Of a DNA stretch of 64,000 nt, positions 5,480 to 54,272 are shown piece by piece. The stretch's first letter is position 1, and every line of letters begins with the position of its first letter. The notes under the pieces are model-generated. The model was given only the letters and a program-made list of their open reading frames with translations, did not search any database and had not been told where the DNA came from. Both the position numbers and the translations under genes were made by a program. Origin of the DNA: Ophelia neglecta. Taxonomy: Eukaryota. The stretch covers positions 61,876,001-61,940,000 of the forward strand of contig OZ260661.1 of assembly GCA_965285935.1 (NCBI GenBank), read 5' to 3'.

Positions 5480-6230
5480 AGAAAACTTCACTGAATGGGA
5501 ACTTTGAGCAGAGGTGCATAATCAGCGGGGTGCCTCAGGGATTCATTCTCGGCCCTGTGTTATTCTTCTCTTTGCAAAGGACATTCCTTTGGCCATCAAG
5601 TACGAAACTTTTCGCCGACGACACTACGATGTGTCGAAAGACTTATAGTTATCAGGAATGTTTACGAATCACTACAAGTAGTCCCAGTTCTCTATCTGCT
5701 TAATTCAAATCCTTGCTTCTGCACTTTAATTTTTCTAAATGTTCTGTTTAACGCATAGGAAATAAAACAATTAAGATACAACAATAGACCGGGGCATGAA
5801 GATTGTGATTCTCAGATGAACGTCGGTGTTATTTGCTCAGCAGATCTCTCACCATCAAGGCATACAACATCATCGCTCATCAGAAAAAGCAGGTGCTTTG
5901 CTAATCTAACTCGGCCCTAACTTTAAACATTGTAATTCCTTATTCATCAGACCGGTGTTAGAATACGCATCATACACCTGGAATCCGTGGCTATAAAAGA
6001 TAAACATTAACAGGAACCTACAAAGACGTGGCTTCAGGCTCAGCTAGTGACCCGTACGTTGAATTGCAATCTCATGAAGGGAAAAAGTTAACTTGGTGTG
6101 GACTTGAAAGTTATTAGGCGGATTCTGCAAAACAGATTCCAGTGATGTTTTCTCTACTCTACATCGAAACCTTAGAGGTCATGCCAGATAATTTTTAAAA
6201 CCAAGGTGCCATACCGAGGCGATTTATTGT
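5480..6230 (+). mobile_element. Decayed non-LTR retrotransposon (CR1/L2-like LINE) reverse transcriptase fragment
   Basis: Frameshifted RT motifs SGVPQGFILGPVLF, KLFADDT, FNFSKC and IRPVLEYASYTWNPW, with stops and frameshifts. Confidence 0.85.
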
Positions 6231-12817: not shown

Positions 12818-14440
12818 TTATTTCCCTTTTTTTAAATTCCTCTGCAATGAAGACTGCACATCCCTGAGACCTTTGTCCTGTCTGGTCCTGCAACAAAAAT
12901 ACAGAAAAATTTAACACGTACATTCTAAGATGGTAGAAGATTCTACTAAACTTGCCTGATATAATGCTTGTTGGGTTTACTGTCGAGCTAGACAGTAGAT
13001 TAACTGGGGAAAATGTGGAGATACATTTCATTGATTTATGATTTATGTCAATCAAATTTACATTATAATCTCAATATAATCGATGGCCCATTGATCAGTC
13101 CTAGCTCCTCCATGTTCAGGCTGCCACCACCTAAACTGGATACCATATGTCCTGGCAGCGGGAGGAATCTCATAAGCCACACGCTTAGGCAGCAAGAATT
13201 CACTAGGTTCATGGGTGGCTATTAAGTTCCAATCTATCCCCTAGAGGAAATGGTGATGTTACATATTAAAGTCAAAAAACATACTTCCATCATTTATATG
13301 TTAGTATCATAACAGCACAAATGTTGAGCTGCATTGTCAGAATGAAACATAAAAGGATTGGGTTTAAAAGTATTATATTGTGCTTTGACATGTAAGTACA
13401 TTTACTTAGGTCCTGAATTCATGACAAACCTTATTTTTGGTATACTCTAAGACAACTACAGCTCTCCCAGACCCAGCTTTCAGATTTACATTACATGTGG
13501 GAACCTGTCGGTTGCTCCCTATCTGCAGCACAAACATCACCTTGCTGAAATGGTGGAAAGAAAAATGATTACCTGGGTTCCATATCGCTAAACAAAACAT
13601 CCAACAAAGTTATGAGTCACTTACCTTGCACGTGTGACGTCCATTTCGGTGGTAACTGCTTGACGAATACCACAGCCATTAAAGTAGAGGTTTTTACCAT
13701 GTGCCAGTGGGAGTAAAGAGCCACATCCCATACCAAGTCCACCTCCTTCAACAGTCTCCCACAGGCCAGTTGACACTCCACCTTCAAAGCCGTCTGTCAT
13801 GTGACTTGGTAATTCAGAACGAACAGGCTTACATGTGTCACCTGGGAAAAGCATGGATCCCATTATATCATAAACAGGATGACATTTGTAAAATGTTTTA
13901 AGCATCAATATACAGTATTAAAGCAACTTCTAAATGAAACATTTTGTCATGACATTTACCTAAATAGCCTGGGTCGCATTCACAAAGCCCATTAACACAG
14001 TCACCTCTTCCATTACACAGTCCAGGGCATTCTTCACCAATATATATGTCATCAATGGCCCAGCCAGGTCCCTCATTGAGAGCTGTATCATCCTGGAACC
14101 AACGAAATCGGGTCTGTCTGAAAATGCAAGATTAGGTAAATGATGTAATAAAGTGTTTGATAGTTTGAAACATTCCCCAAAGTCATGCATCAAATCCACA
14201 TTGAATAAAATAAACAGCACACAAAACTTGGGAATGATCTTGTATTGGAATTTCAACCTTCTTTTTTAAGTTTTCAATTAATGCAAAAAGAATGCAAAAA
14301 GAATGCATAAATAAGCTATGGCCAACCTTATTCTAAAATCAAATTTGGTTTCTATGTCCGATACATTTCTTCTATATCATGCACAGTATTTAAAATTTAA
14401 ATGTCGATAATGTTTTATTTCAATGTAGTATTTCAACTGA

Positions 14441-14485
<45 letters not shown>

Positions 14486-17400
14486 GTAGCTAAATAGCAA
14501 TTAATGGGTGAGAATGAAAAAGGAAAGTTTTAACCTGCTATCTGACTTTATACTGACCATCTAAACAAAAAAGAGTTATAATAATAAAGAAATATAAGAG
14601 GGTAAATCATAGCCTGTATTAAATACTAACACATTCTAAAATTCAATACACCAAAAACAACTGTATTAACTGAATTAGTAAAACAAACGGGCTGAAAACT
14701 CAAGACCAGTGAATATTGCTTCAACACACATGCGTGAGTGAAAATTCCCATGACATGATATTGTTGGTCACTACTTAGGTTTTTTCGGTTTCACTTTCTG
14801 GAAAACAACAGTGAAGTTAATTATACAGCTCAGAGCTGTGTAAGAAAAAGTGAGAACACAGTTTTTTAGGAAGGAAGCAGTTAGTTTAATGCTCCAACTG
14901 GTTTACCCTGAATAGACTTTAGGTGGTAGTAGTAGAGTTGCCCTGCGCCACTCCCTGTGGGTGCTGGCTGTGTAGATCGACCCCTGCTGATACTTGTAGG
15001 GCCTGCACTCCATGTTGTTTTCATGATCATTGATCAGACACTGAGGGTGTATGACATGCCAATCCTCAGAACTGGGATCTTTATTGAACTGCAGTAAGAT
15101 GGCATGTCTGGTATCACAGGCATACTTAGTGTCACCACAACCAACGGTTATCTAAAAAGAGAAAATATATTAATGATACTTAAAGGACCTTTCCTATGAT
15201 CAAGATATACATAAAACAGGGAAAAAATATCAGTAATATCAAGAGTAACATTTAGAACATTTTACTAGCCTTAAACTGTATCATATAATGCTCTTGTACG
15301 ATCATCTGCCTTGTTGTGACCATTTTCATTCCGGAATCATCTTTCCATGCTAACACATGGTCTTGCTTTCCACACATGTTGGTTTCTAGGTGGCCACTGG
15401 GATAGAACTCAATATCATCCATCTCTTCTTCAAAAGTCTCTAGGACATCACTAGGGTTGATCTCAGCACCCCCAATATACACATCATCGAGGCTCCAGGA
15501 GTGTGGCATGTCTGACAGGGGATAGGAGCCCTCTTCCCAGCCCGGGGGAAGTGGCTGCCACCATCGTACACGGGTACTGTTGGTGCGAGCAGCAGCAGGC
15601 AGAGGAATATACTCATGAAGAGGCTCTGCCCAGTAGTTGTTGTGGTCCAACACATGTAGGTTTAACCAAGTAATACCTGAATTAAAACTACACAATTAAT
15701 AAAGAAAATAATTTAATAAAAAAAAATTACAATAAATTAAAAAAGAAAAATGCTTACCACCATCAGTAGAATATTGCAAAAAAACACTCTCATTTCTTGA
15801 GGCCGGTACCCCACATCCCTTTTGTTCAGATGGTCCTCCTATCATGGCATAATACTGGATAAATCTAAAAGAAAGGGTAAATTAAACACTATTTTCTATA
15901 AAAACAGGCAGAGGCAAATATATATCATTTTAACCAGTGTGTGGTAGCAATACCAGGTTGTACCTTTTGTACATTAAATCCATGTTAATAAGCTTCTTAG
16001 AGATTAATTCGGAGGTCACCTTAGAAGGTGTGATTTCCTGCATAGAAAGTACATGTATGTGGGTGTTATCTCACATCTGGCCTTAGAATACGTCTGGTTT
16101 GTCCCTAAAGGTGAAAGTTACTTCCAAGATAACCATCAGACAGAAAACTAAAAGTTGTTTGGCTCTAAGATCTGCCATTTAAAGCAAAACCAATACAAAA
16201 CATTTCCACTTTTGCATGGGAATGAGCCAAATACATATCACCCTTTTTTCTTCAAAAATGGTAGGTGGCATTTAAAAATATCCTAAAAACAAAAGTTGCT
16301 TCAATGCTTTACCTAGCATTTCGTAGATCTAAGTCAACAGTGACAGCTTGTCTCTGACCAGGACCATCAAAGTGTAGACCTGGGGCCTCCATCAATGCAG
16401 AACAGCCTAATCCAACACCACTTCCCTGAATCATGCTCCACCTCCTAGGATCTACAGTTTTGTTCTCAAATGTGTCTTTTAGATCAGTCTGAAAAAGAGA
16501 TCCTAGTACATTATGTGTTATTTAAGTACATGTATTGGTAAAAGATTCTTTGGGAGAAAGATTCTATTCTCTTGTATTTGGTGAAATATTTGATAATTGA
16601 ATCATTTAAGGCATGTTGTTGAGCTGGCACTCTTCATTTTGTCCTTTCCAAGGGAGATTTTCATTTCACAATATGACATTTGTTTGCCATTTCTTTATCA
16701 CTTGTAAAAGGTGGTATCAAATTATCAAGTCATTCAAACAAATAAAATCAAACCATTCTCACCATTGTGGATCTAACTTGGTAGCAGTTTTCACCACGAT
16801 ATCCGCGGTCACAAATGCAGACAGGGTGGTCGCAATGTCCGTGCCCCCCACAGAGATCAGCACAGGCTGGGCCAATATACACATCATCCAGAGCCCAACT
16901 CTGCCTTCCTGATGCTGATGGATCCTCAGGAAGCCACTGCACCCAGCGAAACCTGGTGCCACTGTTTTTCCATGGAAATATATGCTACAGCTTTTTTAAA
17001 AGTTATCACAGCAATAGCTGCTTTTAAGCAAATTGTATCAGAAATATTACACAAGAAAATTGACTAAAGTTTCAATGAAAAAAATATGTGCTCAGTACAA
17101 GAAATATGTTACAGGCTTTAGGCTTTACAAAAACATAGCACAGTAGCACAGGCCAATAAGTTGCTTACTTTGAAACCACAGTTCCATCTAATGGTATGGT
17201 AATCCTTCTCCATCCCACATTGGGATAATAAACACTGGGAATAGTGGCATTGTCATGACACATGGGTATAAATGGCAGACATTGATCTACCAAATGGTGC
17301 CAGTTCATTCCATAGTCATTAGAATACTGCAAATGGACTGGGGCTACATATTTATCACTGGAGCTATTGCATCCTACACTGATGCTGAACTGTAAGATAT

Positions 17401-35400: not shown

Positions 35401-37143
35401 TAACTCCATCAGAATAAGTTGTGGTCAGTGTTGGCCTGGGGGGCACTGCACCTGATCCTATTATTCAACTTGCATATAAAACATCTTATATGAAGCGGTA
35501 CTTTGTATAATCATAAGAAGTGCTAGGATTAATTATCATACACTCATCAGTGGGAAACTGTGCAAACTCATCAAAAAGTAATTATGTGCAGAGTACAGAT
35601 TTATAAAAGATAATTTATTACAAGAGTAAGGTAATAAATGTTGTGAAATATTTTCAAATTTAAGTTAGTATATTTATCTGAAAATAAATGTAGAAGGTTG
35701 CAATACTTACCACCTTCTTCACACAGCTGCATAACAGTGGTGTCTTTGAATAATATTTGAGGTCCAAGTGTTGCAGTTGCTCTATAAAGATATATGATCA
35801 TAGACAAGTGATACCAGATCCACACAAAGAATCATGATCCAAGCCCTACAAAGGCTTTTGGAACTTTGGCTATTTAAAAAGAAAACTGAATTTGAGAAAA
35901 GATGGACCACAATTATATAATGATATTTACTTGTTTTGTTCTAAGCAGCATCTCTTAGTCAGGCCATTAAAGGATAAAATCATTATGTAAAACCAGGACA
36001 TTAACTTGGGACAAGAGTAAAACTTGAAAATAAGTTAATTTCAATCAGTTGTGATCAGTTTACTTAAAGCTTATTAAAATACTAAGAGATAGTCTAGTAT
36101 AGCTTACACAAAACTGACACATCCTGTGCCCTGGGCAGGAGCCTTCCATGTAAATGATAGTTGATGTTTCGGGCGGTGGCTGATATGGGAATGAACATGG
36201 GAGCACATAAAATTTTGTCCAAAAGGTTTTCCAGAGTTGATGGCCAGGCCGGGTAAACTGTTCATAGGAAACCGAGAAAAGTCGCTTGGTATTGTATAAA
36301 GGCCGGTGAGAAGAAAACCATCAAAATCCCTACTAGAGGTTATTGAAACTGAAAGAAAGAGGTATGTGTACCATTCCATTTATTATGTAAACTTATTTAA
36401 TGTAAATTTTTCTTTTTTCATGTGAGACTGCAACATTTTTGTGAATTGAATTATGAAATTATCCGAAACAAAAAAACAATACAAAAACTGCTAATGTTAC
36501 AGTAAATTTCAAGCATGTCTGGTAGGATGAAAATAACTAACAATTTTCATCAAAATAACAATTTCTTACATTGTAATCAAGCTAATATGTTAATATGACA
36601 AATGAAAATTGATAAATAGGTTAAGATCTACGGTAAGAAAAAGCAGGGAGGGAATTCCCAAGAATTCGTGTTTATGAACACAATAAGTACACATTAAATA
36701 CAATGTTATATAAAACACAGACCCTGGGGAAAAAAATCCATTAACTGTCAGATAGTCAATATCCAACTCACCTTCATATAATTCTGAGGGAATGTAATAT
36801 TCTGGATTGTCTTTGATGCTTACACTGATAGCCACTTCACCAGTGTTCAAAGTTGAGAGATCAGACTCAGTATGGTAATTACACATGAAGAAGAATGGAG
36901 ACATGAGGTGGTGTTGAGCTACCCCAAATCCCAGTAATAACAGAAAAATGAGACATTTGGAAAGTTCTTCTTTCATCATTACCACTGATATGGCATCTAA
37001 AATGAATTCATGCAGAAATATCAAACTTTATGAAAGAGATGGATTACTATGATTCAAAAGCTTTGAAGAAATAATGGGTTTTTTAATGAATAATTACTAC
37101 CCAGAAGGCTCTCCTGCTATTCAAACAACTTACCTGATAGCAT
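12818..37143 (-). CDS. RELN: Reelin, full length: signal peptide, reeler/F-spondin-like domain, H region, 8 reelin repeats (A-EGF-B), short basic C-terminus; ~57 coding exons
   Basis: N-terminus ...[28 protein letters not shown]...[18 protein letters not shown]...[11 protein letters not shown] matches Reelin. Repeated YSxxGGxxW Asp-box, TRFRWWQP and WAIDxVYIG motifs. Eight EGF modules at ~30500, 28200, 25690, 23140, 20510, 18580, 16830 and 14000. Last exon 12887-12818 ends ...NLKKGK*. First ATG at 37143 has an upstream in-frame stop; an alternative ATG lies at ~36979. Confidence 0.97.
14447..14480. repeat. (TA)n microsatellite
   Basis: About 17 consecutive AT units in a Reelin intron. Confidence 0.95.
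26014..26116. mobile_element. pogo/Tigger-like MITE (103 bp)
   Basis: TIRs CAGTGTTCCCTGCGATGAAGGGC / GCCCTACATCGCAGGGACCACTG, flanked by TA on both sides. Internal repeats of GATGAAGGGC. Confidence 0.85.
29897..29993 (+). repeat. Purine/G-rich low-complexity tract (G-quadruplex-capable)
   Basis: Multiple GGG-GGGGG runs with repeated GAGTAGGGAAAGGGAGG in a Reelin intron. Confidence 0.7.
35131..35307. mobile_element. pogo/Tigger-like MITE
   Basis: TA-CAGTAAAACCTG...ACTTTCACTG-TA termini, with internal GGACA/TGTCC subterminal repeats. Confidence 0.75.
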
Positions 37144-38352
37144 GATGAGGTTTTTACATCACTTGCTCCCAGAAGAAACAATGATGAGGAAAGAGAAGTT
37201 CAAACACAGACGTATCCTTCCCTGTTTAAGGATGACGCAGTGAATAACAGGGAAGCTGCACATACCATAAGGAATTTATTTCAACCCTAATAAAACCCTA
37301 TACTTCAACACATTGAACAAAAAACTGTGATAATTAGGAGGCAAAACTTAAATTTCCCCATGTGTAAATGTTGATAAAATGAGCTTGCCATAAATCCTAT
37401 CCCAGTGTGACAATACGCAGTACCCTTGAACTAAAGCTGCTATTTATCCTTACAGAGATTATAGAGAAATGCTCAGAAAAGCTACGAACCTTGGCAAGTG
37501 CAAAGTTTTAGAAAATGGGCTCCAGATAGCTTATCCAGTTCATAAGGCACTAATCAGCACATAAAGCTGGTGATTTCTATCAGTGTCAGGGGGTTAGTTT
37601 TAAGTGCCACACAGTTAAAGATAGGAGGCAGCCTGGGAACTGCTGGTTAACGCACAATTATTGTATCATGGAATATCATTTTGAATGTTTTTACAATAAT
37701 GTAACAATGTTTACTTTATATCTTAATGAATCTTTTCTTTATTATTTTTTTATATATTAACCATAAGACATCTTTCGGAGTATTTCATTTAAATTTGATG
37801 TAGCATGTAAGGCTTATTAACAATATAAAATTTTATGATTACAGTTATCTGATTATAAATGTACCTTTTAAAGTATTCATTTTCATACAACAATGCTGGC
37901 CCATCCCAAGGTCAATGACTGGCCTCACCAGGTCCCAGCATATTTAAAATCTCAACTTCTTATCAGCAAACCCCAGGTTGACACCCTTTGGCCGAGCTAA
38001 GCCCATATCAAATTCTAATTGGGACTAAAAACACGGGAGGCCAGAATGCCAGGTCCAATATCATATTTCACTTCTTGCTAGTGTTAGCAGTGATAAAGTG
38101 GTCTGTTTAATCCAAAATTTATGTCTGATATTAAGCTGGAACCATAAATCTTTAAATCAATTGTTTACTTTGAGTGTGTATTTCTAACAAAGTAAGAAAA
38201 CAGGAGCATGCATTGATCATTCATTTATTGACATATAACGTTACATTGTTTTTTATCAATATCTAGAGCCATTTGGTTATTGTCAAGCTCATAAAAATGG
38301 TGGCACAATAATCAAAATGTATTTTCCTTCTGGAGGTGATGTAGAGGATATT

Positions 38353-41300
38353 TCAGCTAATAAAATCAAAGAGATATCTCACTACTTCAAAGTTAACAGA
38401 TCTGAAACAAAAGAATAATCTCTATCATGCGCATAGCATTCTACCCAAGGAAGGTCTTACAGTCAAAATAATATACATGCAATCAACAAAAAGGACTGGC
38501 AAATACATACATTAATCATGAGAAAAATATTTCAAATAGCATTTTCAACATTTAACTAAAACATGATTAGCAGAATTACTTTCTAGTGTCTGTCATTATT
38601 TTTTACTTCATTTTTGTACTGGGATTCAAATGAAAAATATCTGACCCACCTAGAAATGGCTTTGATGAAATCTAACGACACCAAGCATTTATACTTTGGG
38701 CTGTCAAGATGATCTGAGCTGGCAACTTGAGTTATCAGGCCAAGGGTCACTAAAGATGTTATCTGATTAAAAGAAACAGAATCTTTTAATCTTTGATAAA
38801 GTGTGTTTATTTAAACATGGAATTTAGAAACACATGCCCCCCCCCCACACACACACCAATTAAAAGGGACAGTAAAAAAGTTTTTTGCACTTTCAACTCC
38901 TGTGAAAGCAAATATAACCAGATAAATTCTGAAATTCTGTATTTTGCAAAAAAAAAGTGGTTTTCTATAGGTTCTGAATAAAGTGCTAGCATTTTGCTGC
39001 TAAGACAAAGGTGGAAATTGTCATTCTGGTAATTTGACCTTGAAAATGAACACCAAGGTCAAATTGGAGAACTCAATAAGATGCAAAAAATTTCATTTCC
39101 TATATGCTTCCAACATACCTCTAGGCTCTAACTGCTAATATAAATGCTATTTTGATCATTTTGATAATTTGGCTCTAAAGTGAACACTAAGGTCAAATCA
39201 AAGAACTTGCGAAAAAGTGTTGTTTCCTATAGGTTCCCAATGTACTTCTAGGCTCAAGCTTCTTCCATAAATGTCGTTTCCTATAGGTTTTTGAATGTAC
39301 CTCTAGGCCCTAACCATCAGAATTAAGGCTTTATTCATCATTTAATAGTATGACCTTGAAAATGAAAACCAAGGTCAAGTCTGAAAACTTCCTTAGATTA
39401 AAAAAATGTGATTTTTATAGGTACCTATGTACTTCTAGGATCTCACTGCTAAAAATAAGGCTGAAATCATCATTTTTGTAATTTGACCTTGAAAAATTAA
39501 TGAAAACCAAGGCATAGGCACTTCATCCCTGTCAATTTTAGTACCGTCCCTATGCTATTTTTTGTTAAAATGAGTAACAGAGAGTAGTGAAAACAGTTTG
39601 TAACTACGGTAGTAATAGTAGTAAGTTAGTGAAAAGTATTCCCAAAAAATTCCAAAGGCCCAGCACACCAATAATTGCTAATGGTTTCTGTACGTTCATC
39701 GAGGCATTGCTTAGTTAAAACAAATTCATCAGGCGGCAGGGCTTATGGACAACCTCTAGGCCCAATACATGTCCCCCATTTTTTCTTTGAAAAGGGTAGG
39801 GGGAGGGGGGGGGCAATAATAAATATATATCAGACTGTCAATTTTGTTGTTGTCTTGATACTTCAAGCGAAAAGAGTACTACCTGTGTGAATATATTAGC
39901 AGTAGGTGCAACTCTTCCCTCAACAATGGAGTAAAAAATGGCCATGAGTCTGTCCAATGGAAACGGCTTGGGCCCAAGCAACTGGTTACTGGTCTACATC
40001 AAAAAGTAAAATTAAAGGATACATTATCAAATACAAAGTACAATCAAAGGAGCTTACAACTGATAAGTAGCATAGAATACATCAATGAAGAGGAGACTAG
40101 TAAAAAAAAAGCGCAAATAATTGTTCTTCCCCATCAAGAATACAAGTTAATTCTTTATATGATTAGTAACTTATATATTTTAAGGTGTAGCATTGTAAAT
40201 ATGTTGCCAATATAAAAGAGTAGACTGTTCCAGTTTAAGTTGCCATTTTAAGAAATCTAGCCTATATCATTCCAATGGGTTGCTTATTTTCATTTTCAAT
40301 CATGAGTTAGACAATTAGTTTAGATACCTGACAAATTCTAACCTTCAGTTGCAAACTCAAATAATGTACTTATGAACACCCAGACCACTCAGCAATTGTG
40401 ATCACAAAATAGGAAAATCAACATGGCATTGTGGAGGATTGCATTTCATGCTGAAGCTCATACTGCACCCACAAAGGGGGCCAGGGTATGCCCTTCAGTG
40501 AACTTTTGAAATATTGCATAGCATGGGCTGCTTGTTGACAACGGTTTGTCCTTGATTTTTAAAGAACCTTTTATTACATGAAGTTAACAATGCGCACCCC
40601 CATCTAGATAATACATGATAAAATGCATGATAAAACGCAAGATATTACATGATAAAATGCAATGTATTATCAAATACATACTCATATACTAACCCTTTCA
40701 TGTTTCTTGTGAACTGCCAATTGGGCTCTTTTATTTATCTTCCCAGAGTGCTGTAGAAAAATAAAATCAGTTAGAAGGGCGGTGCTCACCTGCAAACAAT
40801 TACATGTACATGTCTCCCTAAGTGGGTGAAGCAATTGTTATGAGAAATATAAAACACACCGGGGCCAAATGAACAATATATGCTGAGAACTGTTAAGGGA
40901 ATTATGATGTCACTGTGCATTGAAAACTCTAGTATAAAATGGAGCTGTATTACATTTTTACCCCCACAAAAAGTTGACGACCCATTTTTATTACTTTTAT
41001 TGCCTAGCGTGAAATATGGCCTAAGGACATTAACTACTGGACAGTATTTAATTTCATATACTCTTCCAATGCATTTAGAAAGCTTACCTGCTTCCATAAA
41101 TGTTATATTTGGCTTGAAAAATGTATTCTTGGTTAAAAAAGTATTTATACAAAGAAGAAAAAAAATACAAATAAAGATTTGTATGAATCTTAGTAGGCCA
41201 AAACCTCCAGGACCTTAATAACTGCTCTTTCACTAAATAACTAGGACTCCAACTCAAAGGGCAACTTAAAACAACACAGTTTGTGTTACAAAGTGACCAG

Positions 41301-44300
41301 GCCAAGTCAATACCTCTGTCTAGCCAATAGGAAGAGAGTCCTAGTCCAAAAAGCCAATCAAATGACTCCAGCCTATATATACTGGGAGTTACTAGCTACC
41401 CTACTTGACTGTTTAGAAGTCACTTGTGTTGCCACCAGATCACATCTTATTACCCTTCCGACAAACCCGTATCTAGTACCTCATGGTCTACCACACGTAA
41501 GAAATTTTGCCAGGAATCTAGGGAAACTCGGTAAACATGCACCCAACACTGATTGACTCACAAATCAGGCTCAGAAAAAGGACACCAGGCAATGTGAGCA
41601 GAGTAACACAACCTGTGCTGATAACAAAGGAGATGTTTAAGCAAATGAAATGCCTTAACATGGCCATGAGGGCATATGAAACCAGATGAATCACTGTATT
41701 TGCCAGTATTGGAAGACAATCTCTTTTCTGAGACGGGAGCAGGTGACGACTCTTCACAATTGGATGTCCAAATCTTTATAATCCACCTACTGATAAGTAG
41801 CAAGACTGATCAAATCAAAGTCCTTCAGCAACCACTAACAGCACTTCTCAGGTTCAGCACTCCTCAAAGGAATGGTTAAAATGCAATAAATAAATGATAT
41901 GATTGGACCAACTCACTTCAAAATCTTATAGCCATAGGCTAATAGCATTTTATAAAAAGTTTATCTGAATTTCAAAGGAAACACATTGATAATATATGGT
42001 GGGGGTAATTAATGAAATTATTTGAAGGAATTTCACAAATACAAATCAAAAAAATAAATGGGGAACAGTGCTCTTTCCATACTTGAGGAAGTTTTATTCT
42101 AAAGTTATTTTTTGTATTAAATTACCAGTTTTTTGGGAGGTGAGGAGAGTTGCCAAAACAATAAAAATTTGAGACCCCATATCTTACTGTGGTTCTAGCT
42201 ATCACATTCCACATAAAATATTGTGAAAGTGCCAGAAATCTATTTTAAAGCATATAATCCTGAAACAATACAAAGCAAATGAAAAAGAAGAATGCAAAAT
42301 TTCTTAATATAAAAAAGTGGAGCCTTTCTAACAGTGATTCAATGTTGGGTTTATATTTATATTTATATTATAGACATCTAGAACAAGTTACCAGCCTAGC
42401 TTGAGTGTTACATTTCAGGCACAGTCTATATTTTAGCAAACATGTATTAAAACTATTGTAATCAGAGTGGGAAAAGTCTCCATGTGGCATATCCAGAGCA
42501 CCCTACAGGTAGTCCAAAAATCTCTGACTTTAATGGCTTTTTAATGTATTGTCAAATGGATATGCCCATTTATTGACCCTACCTATACCAATATAGTCAG
42601 AGATTTTCTGGCCACCCTACAGGACCCATCTCCAGTCACTCCAAATACCGAGATTAAAACAATACCATGAATAATATTGAGTACCTCACTTTATTTATAA
42701 ATGGAAGGAAAAAAGGTTATATCAACATGAAAATCACTCAAGGCAGGGCAAAAATATATCATCTGGAGGAATGGTGAAACCTAGTCCAACTAACTGTCTA
42801 CTTAATTGTTCAAACTTGGCTACATTAGACAGGTGGCCGTATCTCAAATTTCAACTTCAGTGTGGCTGAATTGTTAAAGACAGACAACAGGCATATTAAG
42901 CATCCCCAAAGCATGTGACTCAAGTAGTTGTCACTTCATCAATATTGATTTTTGTTAAGAAAATACCTCTTACCATAGCAAAATACATTTATATGTATAA
43001 TTGTCTGATATTGGAAATCATTCAATCACTACAATTGTGAAACATGGGTTAGGCACAAAGACATTTTAACATTTCAGGCCAGTAGAGATACCCAACATTC
43101 TTCTAGCAATCGATAACATTGAGATGGCAGTCATATATGGACAGTTTGCCATGGGACAACTATCCATCCAAATCTCTATTCTGGAAGGCATTAAAGACAT
43201 TGACAAATTCCTCATAAACTGTATATAAACACAATATTCACTGCAAAGTAAATGAGGAAGACATCATAATGACATTATAATTCCCTGAAGAGTTCCCAGA
43301 ACCCTTTTGTTCCTTTGGCCCTAATAATGATAGCTATGTAATGCTACAGCTACCTACAAGAGTTGTAAAACTTGGACCAATTGGATTTCTACAACAGCAA
43401 TCGAGTGACGACTGTTCTGAGAACCAGCAATACACACAACTAATATGTTGTTATTTTAGTAACTTACAAAATATACATATATATCTCATTATTCACTATG
43501 TCTAATTGGTAATATTTAAGTTTTTTTGTTTCTTTAAGACTCTGTTTAAAATAATATGTAAAGATCAAATTTAGTCTAAAATGTGTTTCAATAAGAGGAT
43601 GTATTCAGAACTGTATCTAAATGAAGTTTGAGAGCTGTGAGAAGTGGCTGTTTAGATGACTATTAAATGTAGTAATAGATCTAAGTGTATTTTTCTGGAC
43701 ACTTTGTATGACTATACTTCATACAATAACCTACTATTACATTAATTTGTACACCTGCATCAACGTTGAATGCCATTGTATGCCAACACAATGACCCCTT
43801 AAGGTATCATGATCAAAATATTGAAGTGGAACTGAAATCCCACGAACCAAGTCTGTGCATGTATGTTGTACATTACTGTGTTTGAATACCTTAAAACTAT
43901 TCTTTACCATAACTGAGGAGTGAGATGGCAAAAACAATGGGGTCTACCAGCAATGAAACATGTCACCATTATTGTGGATATTAAATTTAAAGTGTTATGC
44001 CTGATATAATGAGAGAATTCACCACAAGTAGTTGTTTTACCAAACACTAGTAGTTGATTAAGCAATCATGAGTAGTGGTTTTACACACCTTAACGAAGAA
44101 TCTCTTGTCTGATTTGGCAGGATTGTAGGATGCCAGGTATGCAGCAATCAGTAGGTATTTAGAGTAGAAGGGTAATTCAATGTTGCTTCTTCCTGAAATG
44201 CCTGCAAACCAATCTAAACTTTGAGAATGAGGCATATGACATAAAAATCCATGATTAGCCAACAAATAAAACAGATTCATTGTGTAGATCACAAACTGCA

Positions 44301-47300
44301 GTCCTTGTACAAACATCTATTATTACTACTACAGTGAAACTTGTGAACTTGTGAATTGAGACCACCTAAGGAACTGCAAAATACAGGTCTGATTATGTAG
44401 GTGGTCTGACTAGACAGGTCATTAAACATTTTAAGTGTGTAGTAGGGTCTTCATATTAGAGGTCTGAATTGACAGGCAGGTTTCACTGTATATATTCATG
44501 AAATATTTCTATATTTTCATAGGTCAGGTACAACACATACCTTGGACAGGAGGCAATTCACTGTTTTCAGATGCCAGTTGCTGCATCTTCTCCCATTGGG
44601 CACTGAAATTACATTTGTCCAGAGACCACAATTGTCAGTTTGTTGTAGACAAAAAGACTTAGTTTACAAATTTTTATAGATAAATAAAAAAAACACAAAT
44701 ACTTGACACATTAATACAGAAATGGACGTTTGAAGTTGCTTAGATATACATGTCTCAGTGCCAAGTATCAGTGTTTACCATAAAAAATGGGGGAAGCAAT
44801 AATAAGAAAATAGCATGCCTTGGCTTGTAATGTTTGCAGAAGGGCAATGACATGATCAACTAAATCCAAACAATGTTGTCTAATCGTTTAAAAAATAAAC
44901 AAGACATAAAGTTGCAAAAATGAATCTCAAGAATCCCGCACAAAAGTTTTGGGCATAGTATGAAAGGCTGATCAATTTTGTTTCTCGTCACAAGAGTATT
45001 TATCAGAATATGATAGACTGTTTGATGAATATCTAAAGACATTTCACCACAAAAATCATCATTTCTTTTTTTGAATCACATAAAGATCTGCATGATTCTG
45101 AAGTGAACACTGTTATGATTTTGCTGAACAGTCTTTTGGTGGATAACCTTAAGGTTGCTGCATTTTGACTTGTTCAGCTATTGGTAACAACTCATCTAGG
45201 TGAGTGATGATGCAAGTAAAGGTTTTCTAAATCTGAAGGTCAGAGTTTTGTGACAAAGCATGTAGCAAAAAGTGTTCTGAAACTTCAATTTTCATTTTCT
45301 TTGTACACTCCGTCCCTCAGATCATTTTGTAAATCTGGACTCTGTGTGTGCAGGATAAAAATGAAGTAAAAGTTTACGGTATGCTGGGCATGGTTAAAGG
45401 TGTAGCTGTTCTTATTACCTAGAGATTTCCCTCAGATACACAGTTTCAAGGGCTTTCTTTAAATGACTTTCTATGTTCCTCCACAGTTTGCGGGAGTCAT
45501 TCGCAGTGGCTGCAATAAACAGTAGATCATTTCATATATAGCTTTCTAACTAAAACTAAATTAATTTCAATTACAAGTATCAGATTTGGGTTGATTTACA
45601 GCCAATGTAACAACCAGTAGCACATCCCTGATCATACAGAATACAGTAGCTATGTGGACAACTGTCTGATGAAGATACTGTTGCTTGAAAATGCCTGCTT
45701 ATATGACAGTTCACCAACTTTGGTAAATCAATTGTGTATGAGGAGTATAAAGCAAGGCTTGAATTTACATGTATGTAAGCAAACAACCATGAAGAACTGT
45801 ACAGCATTTTTGCAACAATGAAGGATTGAACAACAAAGCAAAAATGCATACAACAAAATATAACTACCTTCTCCTTTCTTGATAGGTTCAACATACTTTG
45901 GAAAATTTAGTATTGCCTGCAATGAAAGAGAGTTTATCAATTGACTTGTTGCTTTGTATTGGGTGTAATTGTTATAAGGTCTAAGGAATCTTACATTTGT
46001 CACATGCACCCCAGGTTTTGACACTTAATGATCCAAATAAAACCCTTATTTTGATCTGGGAATAATATGTCCCTGCTTAGATCGACCAGAATTCTCTAAT
46101 GTACTACTTACATCACAACAAAATGTGTAGCACCATTATTTTGATAAACCTTAAATACAAATAAATCTGACAGACAGTTGAGCAGACAGACAAAGCAAAC
46201 AGTTGTTATACCCGGTAATTACTAATCAACATGGTGAATATAATCAAGATACATGTATAACATTCTACTTACTAGATGTCGTAGTTCATTCAGATCCCTG
46301 CATGCAACATGGAAAACACTCAGTAACAGGTTCGTATAGTTCATGTACAATTCTCGTGGATAATCACTGGGAGAGTCTGCTGACATAATTTCAACTAATT
46401 CGGCTGAAAAAATATATCAATATCTCCTTAATTGCATGGAGCCAAACAGATATAAAATGTTTACTTGACTCAGAAATGTCAATAACGTATTTAGTGATTT
46501 TGACTGGAAAAAGGTCGCACTCAGGGTATGCCCGTACAATGTACCTTTTGTGTAGTCGGGAAAATGTATGATGTATGGTTCCATGACACCAGTGTTGCCC
46601 CTAAACTTTTCCCAAACAATGTCCGTCTCAAAAATCACACACACATTCAAACCACTCTGAAAATAATAATACAAGGAATAGCCATCAAATACCTGCACAT
46701 TATTTATTTAAGGCTTAAGGCAACATCAGGCACTAAAGGCATTTTCATTGTTTACACTTTAAATATGGATGATAAAACAACACTAATAATATAAAAATTG
46801 TGCAACAAATAATTATATATAGAGGAAAACAGGATTTTAGCTAAATCTACTTACAAGTTCTTGCAGCCTGAGGAGAGCTGGCAACACATTTATGTCCATA
46901 TCTCTTAGCCTTTCTGCTCTTTCAAAAACCTTGAAGGAAAGATACTTGCCTTTTCAAACTAGAACAATTTAGGCACTTTTAAAACACCCAGAATCTTATA
47001 AAAATTCCATTGGAGTTAATTCACAAGGAGAAAATGTCATGCATAAAGACAAATAATACATGTAAATGCATAAAAAATTACCATTCTCATTTCTGATGTC
47101 TTTGAAAAAATGGAGAACAATTAAATAAAACACACTAAGTATTAGGGGTCATACTTACAATGTATGTGGTTTCCTCAGAAAGATTTTCTTCCTCAATGGT
47201 TTGTCTCAATAGGTATATAAAGTCATTCATATTGTCACACCTCACACTTTTTTCATATTCATTTAGAGCGCTTGGCTTTTTGTGTGATAATTGGTTGATG

Positions 47301-48623
47301 ATCTCTTCGTACATCATTCTTGCAGTAAACAGTTCAACACAATTCAAATTCGCATATTTACCCTGTAAATATTGGGAAGTTAAAACAATTGATTTGTATA
47401 ATTCTGCATCGTTTAATTGGTTGTCTCGTCATATGGAATGTAACTGAAAAGCCTGCCACATACATATACATTCAAATGGAAAAATCATCTTTAAAATAAT
47501 ACTGATATAATATATACAAGATTCTGTCCAATAAGGCTTAATAATATCCTACTGTATTTAAGATGAACCCTTTGTACCTGAATTTTATCCATAACTGCCC
47601 TCAAAACAGTTGACTTTCCAGTTGCACAGTGGCCATAAACAAAGAGACTTGGCACCACATAATGGCCCTTCTGAAAAATAATGGCAAGAAAAAACAACCT
47701 TTATAGACAGGCTATATACAAGTATTGCTATTTACTCCAGCTGAAAGCTGAAGGGCATACAGCCTCCTAGCTGGATGTACTAACCTATGGTGGCCTGGGA
47801 ACAAGCACAGAATTATACATGTAGTCCTTTGATCTGCCTAGAAAGATGCTGACAGGCATGATAGGCATGACAGGCATGACAGGCACAGCGCATAGCGCAT
47901 AAAAAAAGTCGGGCAGCTCATTTGTCATGAAATTACTAATTAATTCCTGATAACCTATTGTCACCTGAAAGGTGCGAAATGACAGAATTCCAGTCTTCGT
48001 GAAAAAAGAGCTCCAGACCTTTTTAGTACACAGTGCCATCAGTGCAGTGATAGTGTCCTCTTCCAAATGATAAGCTACTAATAATAACATGCTAAAGCCA
48101 TGACACAAATTATTAGGTGACACCCTAACAATGCTTTTTATGTAGCACCCTCTGGTACCATTCATTGCACTGGACTGGGGCAGGAGCAATAGCGGTCAGC
48201 ATGTCATTTACAGGGTTCTTTAGTAACGAGGAAAAGCTCAAGAAATGCAAAAATTTTGAATTATGCAATTATTGACTTATGATTTATTAGTAACTTGGAG
48301 TTTTAAATTTCATACATCAAATTCTGGGCGAAATTTGTGCATCAAATGATTTATTAGTAAATTTGTGCATCATGTCCACTAGTTGTCAAAGTGTGTTTAC
48401 TGTGTGTACTACTACCAGCAGCTGCCAGGGTGTGGTTTTAAGGCAGTAAGGTTTATATGCCTAAAATATCTACATATGCATGTAATACTATGATCATAAC
48501 AATGAATAAGATAAGGAGAATGCTTACTTCACCAAATAATGAGATCAACAAGTCAATTTGTGCTCTTCTGGACGGAACTGACTGGTATATGTCCTTGATA
48601 GCCTCAGGTACATCTAAATCCAT
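38353..48623 (-). CDS. ORC5: Origin recognition complex subunit 5 (~451 aa, 14 coding exons)
   Basis: Exons 48623-48528, 47670-47578, 47362-47159, 46929-46855, 46656-46545, 46403-46273, 45916-45868, 45509-45419, 44602-44541, 44201-44089, 40750-40694, 39993-39883, 38762-38650, 38401-38353 total 1356 nt in frame. Walker A GHCATGKS; motifs [42 protein letters not shown]. Confidence 0.97.
38940..39680 (+). mobile_element. Non-autonomous element with ~140-170 bp internal tandem repeats (Helentron/HINE-like) in an ORC5 intron
   Basis: Repeated TGACCTTGAAAATGAA..CCAAGGTCAA...TTTCCTATAGGTT...CTCTAGGC units (39036, 39180, 39351, 39484) followed by a (GTA)n-like tail. A similar tail occurs at ~12020-12180. 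Confidence 0.55.
41275..41617 (+). mobile_element. Inverted-repeat-bounded element (solo-LTR-like or MITE) with CCAAT-CCAAT-TATA
   Basis: CACAGTTTGTGTTAC ... GTAACACAACCTGTG (14/15 inverted match). AGCCAATAG at 41322, AGCCAATCA at 41352, TATATATA at 41374. No clear TSD. Confidence 0.45.
44332..44488. mobile_element. pogo/Tigger-like MITE
   Basis: TA-CAGTGAAACTTG...CAGGTTTCACTG-TA termini, with internal AGGTC/GACC repeats. Confidence 0.8.
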
Positions 48624-49584
48624 TTTATCTTAGACTGTAAAACAATAATTCACATTTAACTGGGTTACAATCATAACTTATCAAAGGACTCATGGGCATC
48701 AAAGATGAACATTTAATTACTTCTTAATTACTTCTTAATTCAATCTCCAGATTGTGACACCATCAGATGGGGGGGGGGGGGGGGGTCATAAAATTGTGGC
48801 TCAATCCTATAGCAGGGGGGGGGGGGGGCTTAAAGTTAAATCCCTGTCATTTCAATTGAAATACTGTAGTGGCTTTGGAAGTATTCCATTTTATTTACAG
48901 GAGATTTATTTCTTGCAAAAATACATGGTAGTGTGTGGCAAATTATTTCGCCTTGGAGGGGGGTGCATGGGGATCAACAAAACCATACTCTGAAATGGGG
49001 GGGGGGGGAGGATTACAGAATAGGTGCGGTCTGTGAAAGTGGAGATCGTAAATTTTCACCAAAACCTGAGTAAGGATTACATTGTGCCCCCCCCCTCCAA
49101 TGTTGCATGACCACCTCCTCTTATTTTTGGGACAATTTAATTTAAACTCATATTACTTGTCCTATGCACACATTTACTTGTAATGAGTCCATGGCTGTCA
49201 AGCAAGTGGGTTCTAGAAATTGTTTGCCATAAGTCAGCCAACTCAAACAACCACCTGCCCTGTTTCTCCTATTTGCTCTAGCCCTAACAACCCCCCCCCC
49301 CCCCACCCCCACACCGTCCTGGTGAAATTAAATATTTGGGAAATGATTTCACCATATCTGCATAGGAACAGAGTTTAATCTAGATATATCAGGGGTAAAC
49401 ACAAGTCATCAAGTCATATATTGGCTGAGCTGTGCTCATCAAACATTTAGTCAAACTACTTTAATACATCTGTAGTTTTCTGCACATTTACTTAAATGAC
49501 AGTAATGTTGTCTAATCCCGGTCTGATCACAGTTGTTTGGCGTTTTTCCTATTTATATACTGGCGGTTGCAAATGGTTATTTAC

Positions 49585-49756
49585 CTAATTTCTAGAGCGG
49601 TATTCAACGAGTTCAATCAATCTTCTGTTTTCAACACCATGTTGTCTTCCCCGCGCTGAGATCCGCTATGAATGTAGGGAGAACTTCTGATTGGTCAAAT
49701 AACGTCGAGGAAAAGAGACTTCCGGTAAATGTAAACAAGGAGTGGATTCGGCCCAG
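49585..49756. promoter_or_regulatory. Candidate bidirectional promoter and first non-coding exons of ORC5 (-) and LHFPL (+)
   Basis: Locally CpG-enriched. Minus-strand donor TAG|gtaaat at 49585 and plus-strand donor CAG|gtgaga at 49756, with matching acceptors at 48634 and 50959. Inverted CCAAT (ATTGG 49690-49694) and ETS site ACTTCCGGT (49718-49726) lie between them. Confidence 0.65.
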
Positions 49757-50987
49757 GTGAGAATATGTTAGACTATCTAACTTTATTTGCAATCTTAGAC
49801 AACAGTTTACTGAAAAAACATGCCAGATGTTTATTAAGTCGACAAATAATGTGCAGCAAACAAGAAAAACTGTTTTAGTAGTTCTGAAATAGTAAATTTA
49901 GGTGATTTTATTAAATGTCACACCTGGCTGAATTTGTGGGTCGTGACATCTGTATAACTTCACTTCTATTTGACAGTAGGAGTACTAGTAGGAGATTCTC
50001 TTACAGGCCTATAGCAGAGACGAGTTACTTTTTCTGTACAATTGCTTTCTATCTCTGAAAATTAATGAATGTAATACCAAATATATCTACTAGTAGAACA
50101 TGTCAAGTTGAACATTATTTATAGTTGGCCGGTTATCAGTCATCAGTGTATTCTGTGGCAATATTGATTAAATGATGCATATCAATGTGTAAATATAATA
50201 GGGTTCATTACCCAGCGACCTGTATTATACAGGTCGCTGGCTAATACAGGTGTATGAGACTGTCGGTCTTTATACATGTTCAATAGACTGTATTGTGTCC
50301 AGTGAACAAGATGAATTATTTTATAGATTAATGAATCTTGAATATTTTTAAAGAAGTTAAATAATTACTGATTGCAAATTTATGGTGGTTTTAATATTGT
50401 ATGAAAATGTTTTAACAACATTTAACAAAGAAGAAAACTCATTTACTAATTAATCAATAAAACATATTAAAGTAGGTAATATATATATTGATTGTTTGGA
50501 AATTGATTCCTGATATTTCATATTAACATGGGAAATTAATTACTGGTATTTTAAATTGTGTCCAATTTTTGTGATTTATAATAGGGTTTCTTTTGACATG
50601 ATCCCCCTATCCTCCCTGCAGACCCATATAGCCATTAATTCTTTACTTAAGAGTGAACTATGTTCAAATATGTGTCCTGTTCAACATATATTGCTACACA
50701 TGTCTGCCATGACAGCCTTTCCCCAAAAGATGTATGTCTGGCATAATATTATTTGCTCCAATAAAGGTATGATTCAGTCAATTTTTGCGAGGGTGGTGAA
50801 GGTACCTTGTGCCGTATATGTAGTGACCAGTTTGGTATTGTGAGTCATATCTACCCATGCTAACATTGTGTGCCTGTTTTGGTATGAAATTTTATATGCA
50901 GGATAATGTATTTAATATTATATATAGGTTAAGACATGTTTTCTATTAATTGTTTCAGGAGTCAGGGAGTCACAGAGAGTTCACAAA

Positions 50988-53900
50988 ATGGAGTACCAGA
51001 CGCAAGAAACCTCCAGGGTGTACTACACCAAATATGTTCGCAATTCCCGGGCAGTGGGAGTGATGTGGGGAATCTTTACCATTTGCTTTGCAATCATTAA
51101 CATTATTGTTTTCATCCAACCTCAATGGATCGGAGACACTCTTGATAGTCCCGGCACTGGATATTTTGGCCTGTATCAATTCTGTGAACTCTTCCAATCA
51201 GGCCAAGACTTGGTTTGCCAGGGAAGTTTCAACAATTTCAACACCATCATATCCGATCCTTTTAAGGCATCAGCCTTTTTTATTGGATTTTCTGCCATAG
51301 TTGTGCTTCTTTGTATCGTCTGTATGATTCTCTTTGCATTCATCAAGCCTGGCAAAGTGTACCTCATCTGTGGTTGGCTGCTCATAATTTCAGGTAAGTT
51401 TCATGTCCTTGTATTGGCACTGCATGGCCATTGGCAAGTCATCATTTAATACTGATAATTAACATCTGACAATATGGTGAATGCTATTTATAATTGAAGG
51501 TTGCATGTACATGTGTACATGTGTAAAATCAAATTAGGTGATTCCAGTATATGTATAAAACTCAAGCAAGCACTTCTTTGTAGCATGTGGAGAAGGACAG
51601 GTACATTGTCTATGACCATGTACTAAAGAACAGTGTCTAGCACAGTGCTTTTCTGCTATGCATGGTCTCATTCATGGAATTCCATCTTTTTGTTGCAAAA
51701 GGGCTATGCACTGTATACATTGAAAACTGTTCATACTTGGTTGCTCAGCTGAAACACCGCGTGAACACCATAGACCATAGCATGACTTGAATACATTAAT
51801 TAATTGATCATGTGGCCATTTCCTCAAGCAAAAGTATTACAGTTGCCAATTTTGTTACTGAGTGGGTTTCACATACATGTTCCTTTGTTAGTTCACACAT
51901 ATTTCCCTGGTGAATATGCTAGTGGGATGTTGCGTTGTTTGTGTAAATTCTTTTGCTATCTGTTAGGCATTTCCGAAAGTCTATACAGTTATACTACAAG
52001 CTGTATATACTGTATATATAATTATATTATCTGAAAGAGAAATCCAATTAAGCCCAGAATAAAAACATGAAAAAGAGACATACATTATTCAGTGGGGGCC
52101 TGATTTTTCCATGCTAAGACACTTCCTTATTACCCATATATGTACATGTAGATGTATATATGCAATTTAATTAGTCCTAATTGATGTATACCAAAACACA
52201 ATGAAGCGGTCATATAAATGATGTAAAAATTGAAAACTTATTTGGATAGACATATAAACAAATTAAAACAATGTTAAATAATTGACTTAGTTCATCATAA
52301 TTTATTCCACTTTTCCTAAAACAAAGTGGGGGCAGCCTAAGTGTAAACTGAAATAAAAATCAACATTTATGGCTTAAAAGGATTGTTAAAATGGAATGTT
52401 TTGTATCATTAAGCATGATGCATGTTAACTTTTAACTTTTAAATCATTGTTTTAGGACTATGCATGTTCTTGGGGTGTGTTATCTTCCCAGCCGGTTGGG
52501 ACAATGATGACGTAAGAAGAATCTGTGGCGCTGAAGCTGAACAGTATCGCATTGGTAATTGCGGCGTTCGCTGGGCCTTCATCCTGGCTATTATTGGAAT
52601 ATTTGATGCTCTCGTCCTCTCCATTTTGGCTTTCGTACTTGCCAGCAGACAGGCATACTTCCATGAGTATACTGGTCAAAAATGTAAGTTTGATAAATTG
52701 ATTTTTGAAATATTAAGATTTTTAATATTCATATTCCTTCACTAAAATGATCATGGCTGGCCATGATCTCACTATGCATTGGATTGTTATACCTCATGAT
52801 TTTTCATCATTGTTCTCCACATAAATTTGTTATTTAAGAGTAAAGTGTGTGTTTAAAGCATTGACACTAAACAGGGCTATCTAGACATACATTTTAAATG
52901 TCAGTTTTATTAAACTATTCCAGTTATACCCAATTAATAAGTATGGTAAGTTGACATTGTCCCATCGGCAAAAGAGGACCATTTTGCACTGGCTTAGATT
53001 GCTCTTCCCTTTATATTTCATCTTTAATGTGCACTATTCTGCTCACTATTCAAAAAATGTGTGAATATCTGGATCTATCATGTATTCTAGTAGCAAATCT
53101 GAGATATGTATTAAAACCCTAGTCATAGGTAAATATGATAGTATTGCTTAGTTCAGTCTGATTTGCAACCTTGAAAAGTTAGAGCATATTAAATCAAACC
53201 ATGAGCACATTTGCCAACCACCTTCCTTTTGTACTTTCATTTGTTTGATTTTTGAGACAATTTTCACTTAAGTGAAAAGGGCAACACTTCTATACAAAAT
53301 AAAAAAGCATTCTGTATTTCCTGAATTTGTCTTAATTATGCTACTAGAACTAAATAGAATGGCCACGCACCCTGCCGCAGTACATTGTTTTAGCCATAAC
53401 TAAGCAATGCTTGACGCATTTAATATTTTTTTCCTTATTGATGTATTTGGGACTGGGAAATGTTTATGGATACTTTTATGAACTTATTGCTACTACTAGT
53501 CTCAAGTTAAGATATAATAACCACCGTGCTTATATAAGGTGAGCCATTGACAGGGATAAAGTGCCTGTACTTGGCCATGAACTGATTAACACTTGCCAAT
53601 GGGAGAAAATGGAAAAAGATTAGTTGCCATGGCAATACGAAATGAAATGTGCAATTGACAAAAAATAGTGAAGGCCTTTCTTGCCACTACAGGCAAATTG
53701 AAGTGTGTTGAGAAAACTATTGGGGGGGGGGTCTTTATCAATTCAATCTGACAGTGTTATGTATTCAAATTGGGGATGGGGGGAGGGAGGGGATACAAAT
53801 TCCTGTCTATGAATTTCTGGACATTTCAAGTAATTTCCTAGCAAGTTCATAGCAAGTACAAAATTTGGTTGGGAGTGGTCTGTAGGACAGACATGTTTAC

Positions 53901-54272
53901 TAAACCTTACCATAGGTGGGGGGCTTGCATTCCTAAACACTTTGTTGTTCATTGTGCTCAAAGTTTGCATAAACTGTGAATAAGAAGGCCGCAAGTAAAC
54001 TCTTCTGGTCATGTATTAAAGAGAGGTAACCTTTGTAAATAATCTGTCAGCACTATAAAAATGTAAATGAATTTATACAGTGGAATACCAGTATACACTA
54101 GATTATTGTTTGCTCTTCCTTTTTAGCTGACCTCAATGGCTATGCTATTGACACCGAGTCGAAGAGGTCGATGATGATTCAGCCAGTCCTCGCCGTCCCA
54201 GAAGGTGACCACTACTCAGAGTACTCCCATGCCTCAGGCAAACGCTCCAGGAAGGGAGATTTTGCTCTGTAA
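50988..54272 (+). CDS. LHFPL3: LHFPL tetraspan subfamily protein (LHFPL3/4/5, TMHS-like), ~259 aa
   Basis: Exons 50988-51393, 52456-52683, 54127-54272 (780 nt). Signature [22 protein letters not shown]...IQPQWIGD...GYFGLY, four TM helices, FPAGWD...CG...[14 protein letters not shown]. Ends KGDFAL*. AATAAA at 55733. The symbol is family-level (likely co-ortholog of LHFPL3/4/5). Confidence 0.93.

Follow-up and report, generated by a model that had tools for sequence, protein, structure and literature searches.

Ancient microsyntenic blocks, which were later also surveyed, reportedly, by Simakov and colleagues, are among the closest described systems for the locus treated here, in which the genes for Reelin, ORC5 and a tetraspan protein of the LHFPL family are direct neighbours within a block of ~41.5 kb. 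The locus lies in a stretch of 64,000 nucleotides from Ophelia neglecta (GenBank assembly GCA_965285935.1, contig OZ260661.1, positions 61,876,001 to 61,940,000 of the forward strand), which was analysed as a whole and is called the window below. The slowly evolving genomes that keep this trio have also yielded hundreds of other microsyntenic pairs of ancient origin (Irimia et al. 2012, PMC3514665). In mammals, RELN, ORC5 and LHFPL3 all lie within a 2-Mb interval of mouse 5A3/human 7q22 (PMC4569895), the human/mouse linkage being available also from PMC10244266, in which human ORC5 is ubiquitous and LHFPL3 brain-specific; in the dog, the three genes share one candidate interval of ~5 Mb on chromosome 18 (PMC9897549). 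The block as such was named in no searchable text (what a full-text search for the three genes and synteny turned up was confined to papers on disease in human, dog and mouse); the surveys' supplementary tables (Irimia 2012, Touceda-Suarez 2020, Simakov 2015) were outside this search and may list it. Reelin orthology outside vertebrates is still treated as open in some recent neuroscience papers (PMC9454125).

In the window, LHFPL diverges from ORC5, and Reelin follows ORC5 on the same strand. The first-pass annotation, prepared from the letters of the window, had claimed Reelin (-), ORC5 (-) and LHFPL (+) as neighbours, and all three genes were found at the positions and on the strands given there. 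Since the block occurs in protostomes and deuterostomes with identical orientation, it should have been present at the latest in their common ancestor; as judged from the compared assemblies, Reelin-ORC5-LHFPL is very probably a block inherited from the protostome-deuterostome ancestor at the latest.

Distribution of the trio among animals

The neighbourhood survey was performed in annotated assemblies with ORC5 as the anchor, 10 kb being considered on either side. The arrangement LHFPL(-)/ORC5(+)/Reelin(+), which is that of the window inverted, was found in Lingula anatina (LFEI02000177; gaps of 1.3 and 3.0 kb), Ptychodera flava (CM083788; gaps of 1.9 and 5.7 kb, Reelin of 3459 amino acids (aa)), Lottia gigantea (KB202283; gaps of 1.2 and 2.9 kb, Reelin of 3454 aa) and a contig of a related species in ENA (18.5 kb; hereafter L002), of which LHFPL exon 1 is 86% identical to that of the window. 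The 12.3-kb stretch of L002 that was examined comprises the 5' part of Reelin, the whole of ORC5 (3.2 kb) and LHFPL, all three genes starting within 12 kb. The trio genes in these four assemblies were confirmed by tblastn with the window exons. No called gene separates the members of the trio in the kept loci, with the exception of a DEAD-box helicase gene inside the ORC5 span of Ptychodera (L014:16440-18768, same strand, 609 aa), which, since it is called within a range of 2.3 kb, should have few or no introns.

The relative orientation (LHFPL divergent from ORC5; Reelin downstream on the same strand) was identical in all five assemblies including the window, and the adjacency is shared, among protostomes, by Mollusca, Brachiopoda and the spiralian of the window, perhaps an annelid, and, among deuterostomes, by Hemichordata. 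The head-to-head spacer between ORC5 and LHFPL measures 1.2-2.4 kb in six assemblies (between coding starts or gene models; ~1.7 kb in L002), and the spacer from ORC5 to Reelin 1.4-5.7 kb across the block-keeping species. Coincidence, convergent assembly of the neighbourhood, and an assembly or annotation artefact are effectively refuted, and nothing was found in their favour: five independent assemblies from different projects agree in the trio, its order and its orientation, and the recurrence of the same orthologues in that layout in the four assemblies other than the window excludes chance, which by our own estimate would give the specified triple at ~1e-9 per genome (at ~20,000 genes). 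The first-pass proposal of an ancient microsyntenic unit predating the vertebrate split is thus borne out by the identical layout in the hemichordate, the mollusc, the brachiopod, the window and the relative.

As for vertebrates, LHFPL(-) and ORC5(+) stand head-to-head, 2.2 kb apart, in the teleost Chanos chanos. A gene of 2995 aa located 9.3 kb downstream of ORC5 was not confirmed as Reelin there, as ~660 bp of it fall within the locus and these gave no tblastn match. An EF-hand gene (L020:17374-20281, 189 aa, opposite strand) lies between ORC5 and this next large gene of Chanos, an insertion with respect to the invertebrate layout. The first-pass annotation had further claimed the order and orientation of human 7q22 for the window. 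Its linkage part agrees with the mammalian intervals introduced at the outset (the human and mouse papers); its strand part holds with the human strands that we take to apply (RELN -, ORC5 -, LHFPL3 +).

The three genes and their orthology

The window is part of a contig (C1) of an assembly of 762 Mb in 223 contigs; its DNA is eukaryotic, with a G+C content of 32-45% and no runs of N. The sequencing runs listed for this genome were three of DNA type, all from one sample. All searches, and the genomic rows of all trees, were based on single exons. The features are collected in Table 1. The open reading frames (ORFs) of both spacers and of the 3.2-kb ORC5 intron matched no Pfam family, and the three genes are thus immediate neighbours.

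Table 1. Features of the window, in positions counted from its first nucleotide
Feature	Position	Strand	Extent and evidence
Reelin	12818-36979	-	complete: putative signal peptide/N-terminal region, 8 Reelin repeats with EGF, short basic C-terminal exon (predicted); ATG at 36979, predicted stop 12818-12820
ORC5-Reelin spacer	36980-38352		1,373 bp, ORC5 stop to Reelin ATG; exon maps
Conserved non-coding element	37525-37588		blastn and alignment to L002:4111-4173
ORC5	38353-48617	-	complete, 14 coding exon pieces; ATG at 48617, stop 38353-38355; per-exon blastp, Pfam, PDB
ORC5-LHFPL head-to-head spacer	48618-50987		2,370 bp, ATG to ATG; gene maps
Conserved ETS/forkhead element	49718-49764	+	blastn, alignment, motif scan
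LHFPL3/4/5-type tetraspan gene	50988-54272	+	three coding exons (50988 to ~51407, ~52443-52700, ~54102-54272); ATG at 50988, stop 54270-54272; Pfam, PDB, tblastn exon map, trees
Aldose 1-epimerase gene	1.1-3.9 kb	+	outside the trio
RING-CH gene	~8 kb	+	outside the trio
Cytochrome b561 gene	57.6-59.2 kb	-	outside the trio

Exon pieces of Reelin matched Pfam Reelin_subrepeat-B (best E 1.8e-27), and eight EGF modules were located on the minus strand at ~30.3, 28.2, 25.7, 23.16, 20.55, 18.65, 16.86 and 14.03 kb, with a spacing of ~2-3 kb, as in the canonical architecture of eight repeats, in each of which an EGF module stands between subrepeats A and B. Genome-wide, 19 matches to Reelin_subrepeat-B were obtained, and because every one of them is inside the window (13.1-29.4 kb), Reelin is single-copy. 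The piece counted as subrepeat B of repeat 5 matched residues 277-369 of the mouse R5-6 crystal chain at 1.5e-50 (R3 at 3e-18), and the piece after it matched subrepeat A of R6 (residues 450-507). Such repeat-specific matches to mouse R5-6, obtained with a PDB that covers R3, R5-6 and few other fragments, indicate that the Reelin repeats are individually orthologous to the vertebrate repeats. Exon 1 encodes a hydrophobic leader, and in Lottia, Lingula and Ptychodera the first exons of Reelin align with it; taken alone it gave no Pfam Reeler match, and exon 2 gave no PDB match. The Reelin orthologues of the same three species gave weak or faint Reeler matches. The last exon was read from the sequence (GTAAAT donor after 13062, acceptor before 12887, short basic tail); it would be joined by a splice from ~13062 to 12887, and the resulting predicted stop falls exactly on the start coordinate of the block in the first-pass annotation.

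The 14 exon pieces of ORC5 are colinear with residues 1-451 of Lingula ORC5 by per-exon blastp, and the per-exon identities were 51-60% to every phylum compared and do not discriminate between them as the closest to the window species. Pfam ORC5_C (1.5e-11), AAA_16 and human ORC5 in PDB (2.4e-11) were matched, and the gene shows, colinear over its full length, an AAA+ N-terminal domain with Walker A followed by the ORC5 C-terminal domain. As all ORC5_C matches in the 762-Mb genome are inside the window, ORC5 is single-copy. Its introns, inflated by repeats, amount to 8.4 kb in all, the largest being at ~40.84-44.05 kb. The direct repeats D8 (3 copies) and D9 (2 copies), of 61-69 nt, occupy 38986-39495 within an ORC5 intron, and the long introns are therefore partly repeat-derived. 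A 57-bp match (79%, E 0.003) of 43451-43506 to Lottia sequence directly beside an ORC5 exon was also noted; this segment may be a small additional ORC5 exon outside the 14-piece map. In Lingula anatina, two near-identical ORC5 proteins (P0147 and P0198, in one 90%-identity cluster) are encoded on scaffolds of 575 kb and 303 kb, and may represent haplotigs or a recent duplicate.

The LHFPL gene ends at the end coordinate of the block in the first-pass annotation. Its main exons matched Pfam L_HMGIC_fpl at 2.9e-27 and 1.6e-27, and in PDB LHFPL4 (2.6e-41) and LHFPL5 (1.2e-35); all named best matches were LHFPL3/4/5, with ~50% identity to vertebrate LHFPL4/5. Five further LHFPL-family loci of the genome (C2, C5, C12) are 25-28% identical to LHFPL3/4/5 proteins; in the subfamily comparison, the paralogues of the own genome gave 24-28%, whereas the window copy gave ~50%. 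By these similarities, the window LHFPL is the sole 3/4/5-type copy in the genome. The C2 paralogue, the one tested, matched proteins named LHFPL6-like.

In the maximum likelihood trees, in which the genomic rows consisted of exon 1 only and the named vertebrate proteins were other than LHFPL1, 2, 3 and 6, the window LHFPL fell into one clade (support 99/98 and 100/100) with the copies that adjoin ORC5 in Lingula, Lottia, Ptychodera and Chanos, with LHFPL4 and LHFPL5 of vertebrates and with invertebrate proteins named 'LHFPL3-like'. A LHFPL6-like clade, including the C2 paralogue, was separate from it. Within the exon tree, the window copy stood beside that of Capitella, and the Chanos copy fell within the 3/4/5 clade and outside the LHFPL4 and LHFPL5 clades, a placement that would be expected for LHFPL3. 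The first-pass annotation had made its reading depend on a grouping of this LHFPL with 3/4/5 rather than 1/2/6; the ORC5-adjacent copies are indeed in the 3/4/5 clade, apart from the LHFPL6-like proteins.

Spacers and the retention of the block

When the window was compared with L002 by blastn, the colinear matches were all exonic except two short elements, both in spacers. The first (~64 bp, 77% identical) carries a palindromic GATA-type pair and a TAATCA core. The spacer in which it stands must hold the ORC5 3' untranslated region (UTR) together with the Reelin promoter and 5' UTR, and the element is a candidate for a proximal promoter element of Reelin or for an element of the ORC5 3' UTR. 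The second (47 bp, 83% identical to L002:9291-9336) has an ETS site, ACTTCCGG, at 49718, a forkhead site, TGTAAACA, at 49730, and a conserved splice-donor-like CAG/GTGAG on the LHFPL strand with the exon end at 49756. It probably marks the LHFPL core promoter and a short non-coding first exon, and the conserved donor suggests that the start of LHFPL is at most ~1.1 kb from the ORC5 ATG. The head-to-head spacer of the window is a candidate bidirectional promoter region. Note that an ETS core upstream of the Capitella LHFPL, single and in opposite orientation, was judged to be due to chance.

The first-pass annotation had proposed two regulatory ties, a promoter shared by ORC5 and LHFPL and Reelin enhancers inside the ORC5 introns. 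The former is consistent with the short head-to-head spacer of the six assemblies and with the one conserved 47-bp element. The latter was left unsupported, as no conserved intronic sequence was found against the relative or across phyla: the ORC5 introns of the window gave no significant match to the ORC5 of the relative (masked sequence, permissive blastn, best E 0.8), of which ~1.6 kb is non-exonic, and the cross-phylum nucleotide comparisons gave exonic or low-complexity matches only and no conserved non-coding element, in a test of low power (one relative, blastn only, phylum distances too great for most enhancers). Thus, on present sequence data, the regulatory explanation appears plausible as promoter sharing and unsupported as intronic enhancers.

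These comparisons bear directly on the possibility of a classical genomic regulatory block, in which enhancers of Reelin (or LHFPL) would reside in the ORC5 introns and ORC5 would be a trapped bystander. With ORC5 placed between two tissue-restricted genes (of the human genes, ORC5 is ubiquitous and LHFPL3 specific to the brain, PMC10244266), the layout is bystander-like, and Reelin is directly downstream of ORC5 in every syntenic species. However, none of the non-exonic ORC5 sequence of the relative aligns to the 8.4 kb of intronic sequence in the window, the long ORC5 introns of the window carry repeats, the cross-phylum matches are all exonic or low-complexity, and the targets in such blocks are usually transcription factors, to which Reelin does not belong. 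We consider this explanation quite improbable.

The feature common to all block-keeping species is one of geometry, namely two short spacers, one divergent and one tandem. An ancestral trio with interlocking control regions is, in our view, the best explanation overall, and is held with moderate confidence. In its stronger form, for which we would give an even chance, the block would survive as three tightly packed transcription units with interlocking control regions: ORC5 and LHFPL would diverge from the 1.2-2.4-kb spacer, in which their promoter regions are probably shared or overlap; the promoter of Reelin would lie 1.4-5.7 kb behind the ORC5 stop, so that upstream control DNA of Reelin would have to overlap ORC5; and nearly any breakpoint in the block, by disrupting either a promoter or a gene essential for replication, would be removed by selection. 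In view of the several independent breaks of the block, such a constraint would not be absolute.

Several observations weigh against a constraint of this kind. Adjacency was absent within 10 kb of ORC5 in Owenia (ORC5 between Thg1 and a methyltransferase gene), Capitella (no ORC5 upstream of LHFPL; ORC5 on another scaffold), the sea star Acanthaster (ORC5 nested in an ABC transporter gene), Priapulus, Daphnia and the coral Oculina, and in Tubulanus and Paralvinella ORC5 and LHFPL are on contigs that differ in length. The ETS/forkhead pair was absent from the spacers of the other phyla in the motif scan. The spacers of the human trio are, as we take them to be, ~100 kb (1.4 and 2.4 kb in the window), so that a literally shared promoter cannot explain the retention there. 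The block-keeping taxa (Lottia, Lingula, hemichordates) are slow rearrangers, which also fits neutral retention. Adjacency having been lost in several lineages, strong constraint is doubtful. The first-pass annotation had named, as the outcome that would speak against its reading, a trio unlinked in most other invertebrates; by number, this is what the survey gave (six lineages without adjacency within 10 kb and two with separate contigs), the negatives meaning 'not adjacent within 10 kb' and not 'unlinked', and in Owenia and Gigantopelta ORC5 and LHFPL are on contigs of identical length, presumably the same chromosome. As read from these assemblies, the block is broken several times independently, and would be bilaterian rather than metazoan on present evidence, with one cnidarian lacking it. 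The count of losses weakens the claim of strong constraint, not that of common ancestry.

The main rival is neutral inertia, according to which the block is ancestral and nothing holds it: spacers of 1-3 kb are a small target for breakpoints, and the block is lost where rearrangement is faster. This account is favoured by repeated independent loss (annelids, nemertean, sea star, priapulid, crustacean, coral), by the failure to find non-coding conservation either within the ORC5 introns or between phyla, and by the hundreds of ancient pairs in the same slow genomes (PMC3514665). On the other side, the genes flanking the trio are not the same in the window as in the other syntenic loci, the trio itself being intact, and head-to-head geometry is associated with constraint in systematic surveys. 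Moreover, order and orientation are kept in vertebrates although the locus there exceeds 1 Mb (the figure of the first-pass annotation, which we take to be correct), so that the target is no longer small. Neutral inertia is regarded as possible but unlikely. As for the preferred reading of interlocking control regions, its most far-reaching version, in which the three genes would be coupled in function (ORC5 and LHFPL by a promoter region in common, Reelin by control DNA that overlaps ORC5) and a replication gene would thereby have been locked between two nervous-system genes for more than 550 million years, is distinctly doubtful.

Surroundings, significance and related systems

The composition of the window changes sharply at ~12 kb: observed/expected CpG was 0.62-0.96 over 1-12 kb (the aldose epimerase and RING-CH genes), fell to 0.07-0.43 over 12-61 kb (Reelin, ORC5, LHFPL, cytochrome b561 and the spacers) and was higher again past 61 kb; GpC was near 1 throughout. 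The low-CpG stretch suggests one continuous, historically methylated domain with the promoters included, which is unusual for tissue-specific invertebrate genes. Similar low-complexity ORFs with G or P runs were found on opposite strands at 12060-12435, 39675-39890, 48739-49152 and 58658-58879, and thus, among other places, in the ORC5/LHFPL spacer and at either edge of the block; a dispersed short repeat may be involved. Between the aldose epimerase and RING-CH genes, an ORF fragment with a reverse-transcriptase-like motif (5413-5700, plus strand) suggests a retroelement remnant, and clustered short tandem and direct repeats (9884-10804, units of ~90-155 nt) lie in the gene-poor DNA that separates the RING-CH gene from Reelin. 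A G-rich tandem satellite (62636-63985; unit ~84-100 nt, 12-16 copies, 60-93% identical, GC skew up to +0.35) extends to the window end.

With this locus, the 3,450-aa invertebrate Reelin genes are true RELN orthologues by position as well as by sequence, and both the eight-repeat Reelin and the neighbourhood in which it stands go back to the ancestor of protostomes and deuterostomes. The loci of 12-42 kb that keep the block, or have lost it, form a compact, replicated test case for selection versus inertia around a housekeeping gene. If the coupling were true, it would bear on the reading of non-coding variants between ORC5, LHFPL3 and RELN at human 7q22, and the compact invertebrate loci (12-42 kb) would be usable as miniature models of the more than 1 Mb of human 7q22 and its non-coding disease associations. 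As it stands, the block adds one to the hundreds of ancient microsyntenic blocks already described, and its added value is the positional proof of Reelin orthology outside vertebrates.

Compared with human/mouse 7q22/5A3, the same three orthologues are adjacent in matching order and orientation (with the strands as we assume them), and ORC5, ubiquitous, stands between two nervous-system genes. The block presumably exceeds 1 Mb at human 7q22 (again after the first-pass annotation and our own assumption), whereas it takes ~41.5 kb in the window and its gene starts fall within 12 kb in L002. Beyond the trio, the human neighbours are presumably SLC26A5 and KMT2E, and those of the window are the aldose epimerase, RING-CH and cytochrome b561 genes. 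With bidirectional promoter pairs having ETS-family sites, the locus has in common that the two genes diverge from a short spacer and that, in the window and the relative, a conserved ETS core (ACTTCCGG) lies in mid-spacer; the usual criterion for such pairs is, however, starts less than 1 kb apart, whereas the present distance is known as ATG to ATG (1.2-2.4 kb), and the LHFPL partner is expected to be tissue-specific, unlike the housekeeping partner of such pairs. The geometry is also like that of genomic regulatory blocks, with a housekeeping bystander wedged between regulated genes and long-lived synteny, but the conserved elements in bystander introns that define this class were sought and not found, and the putative targets are not transcription factors. 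In every respect tested, the block belongs to a known class, ancient microsynteny: as in the ancient metazoan microsyntenic blocks described by Irimia et al. (PMC3514665), unrelated genes have been adjacent since early bilaterians, are kept together in slow genomes and separated in fast ones, and comprise a housekeeping gene with tissue-specific neighbours, two of the genes being head-to-head.

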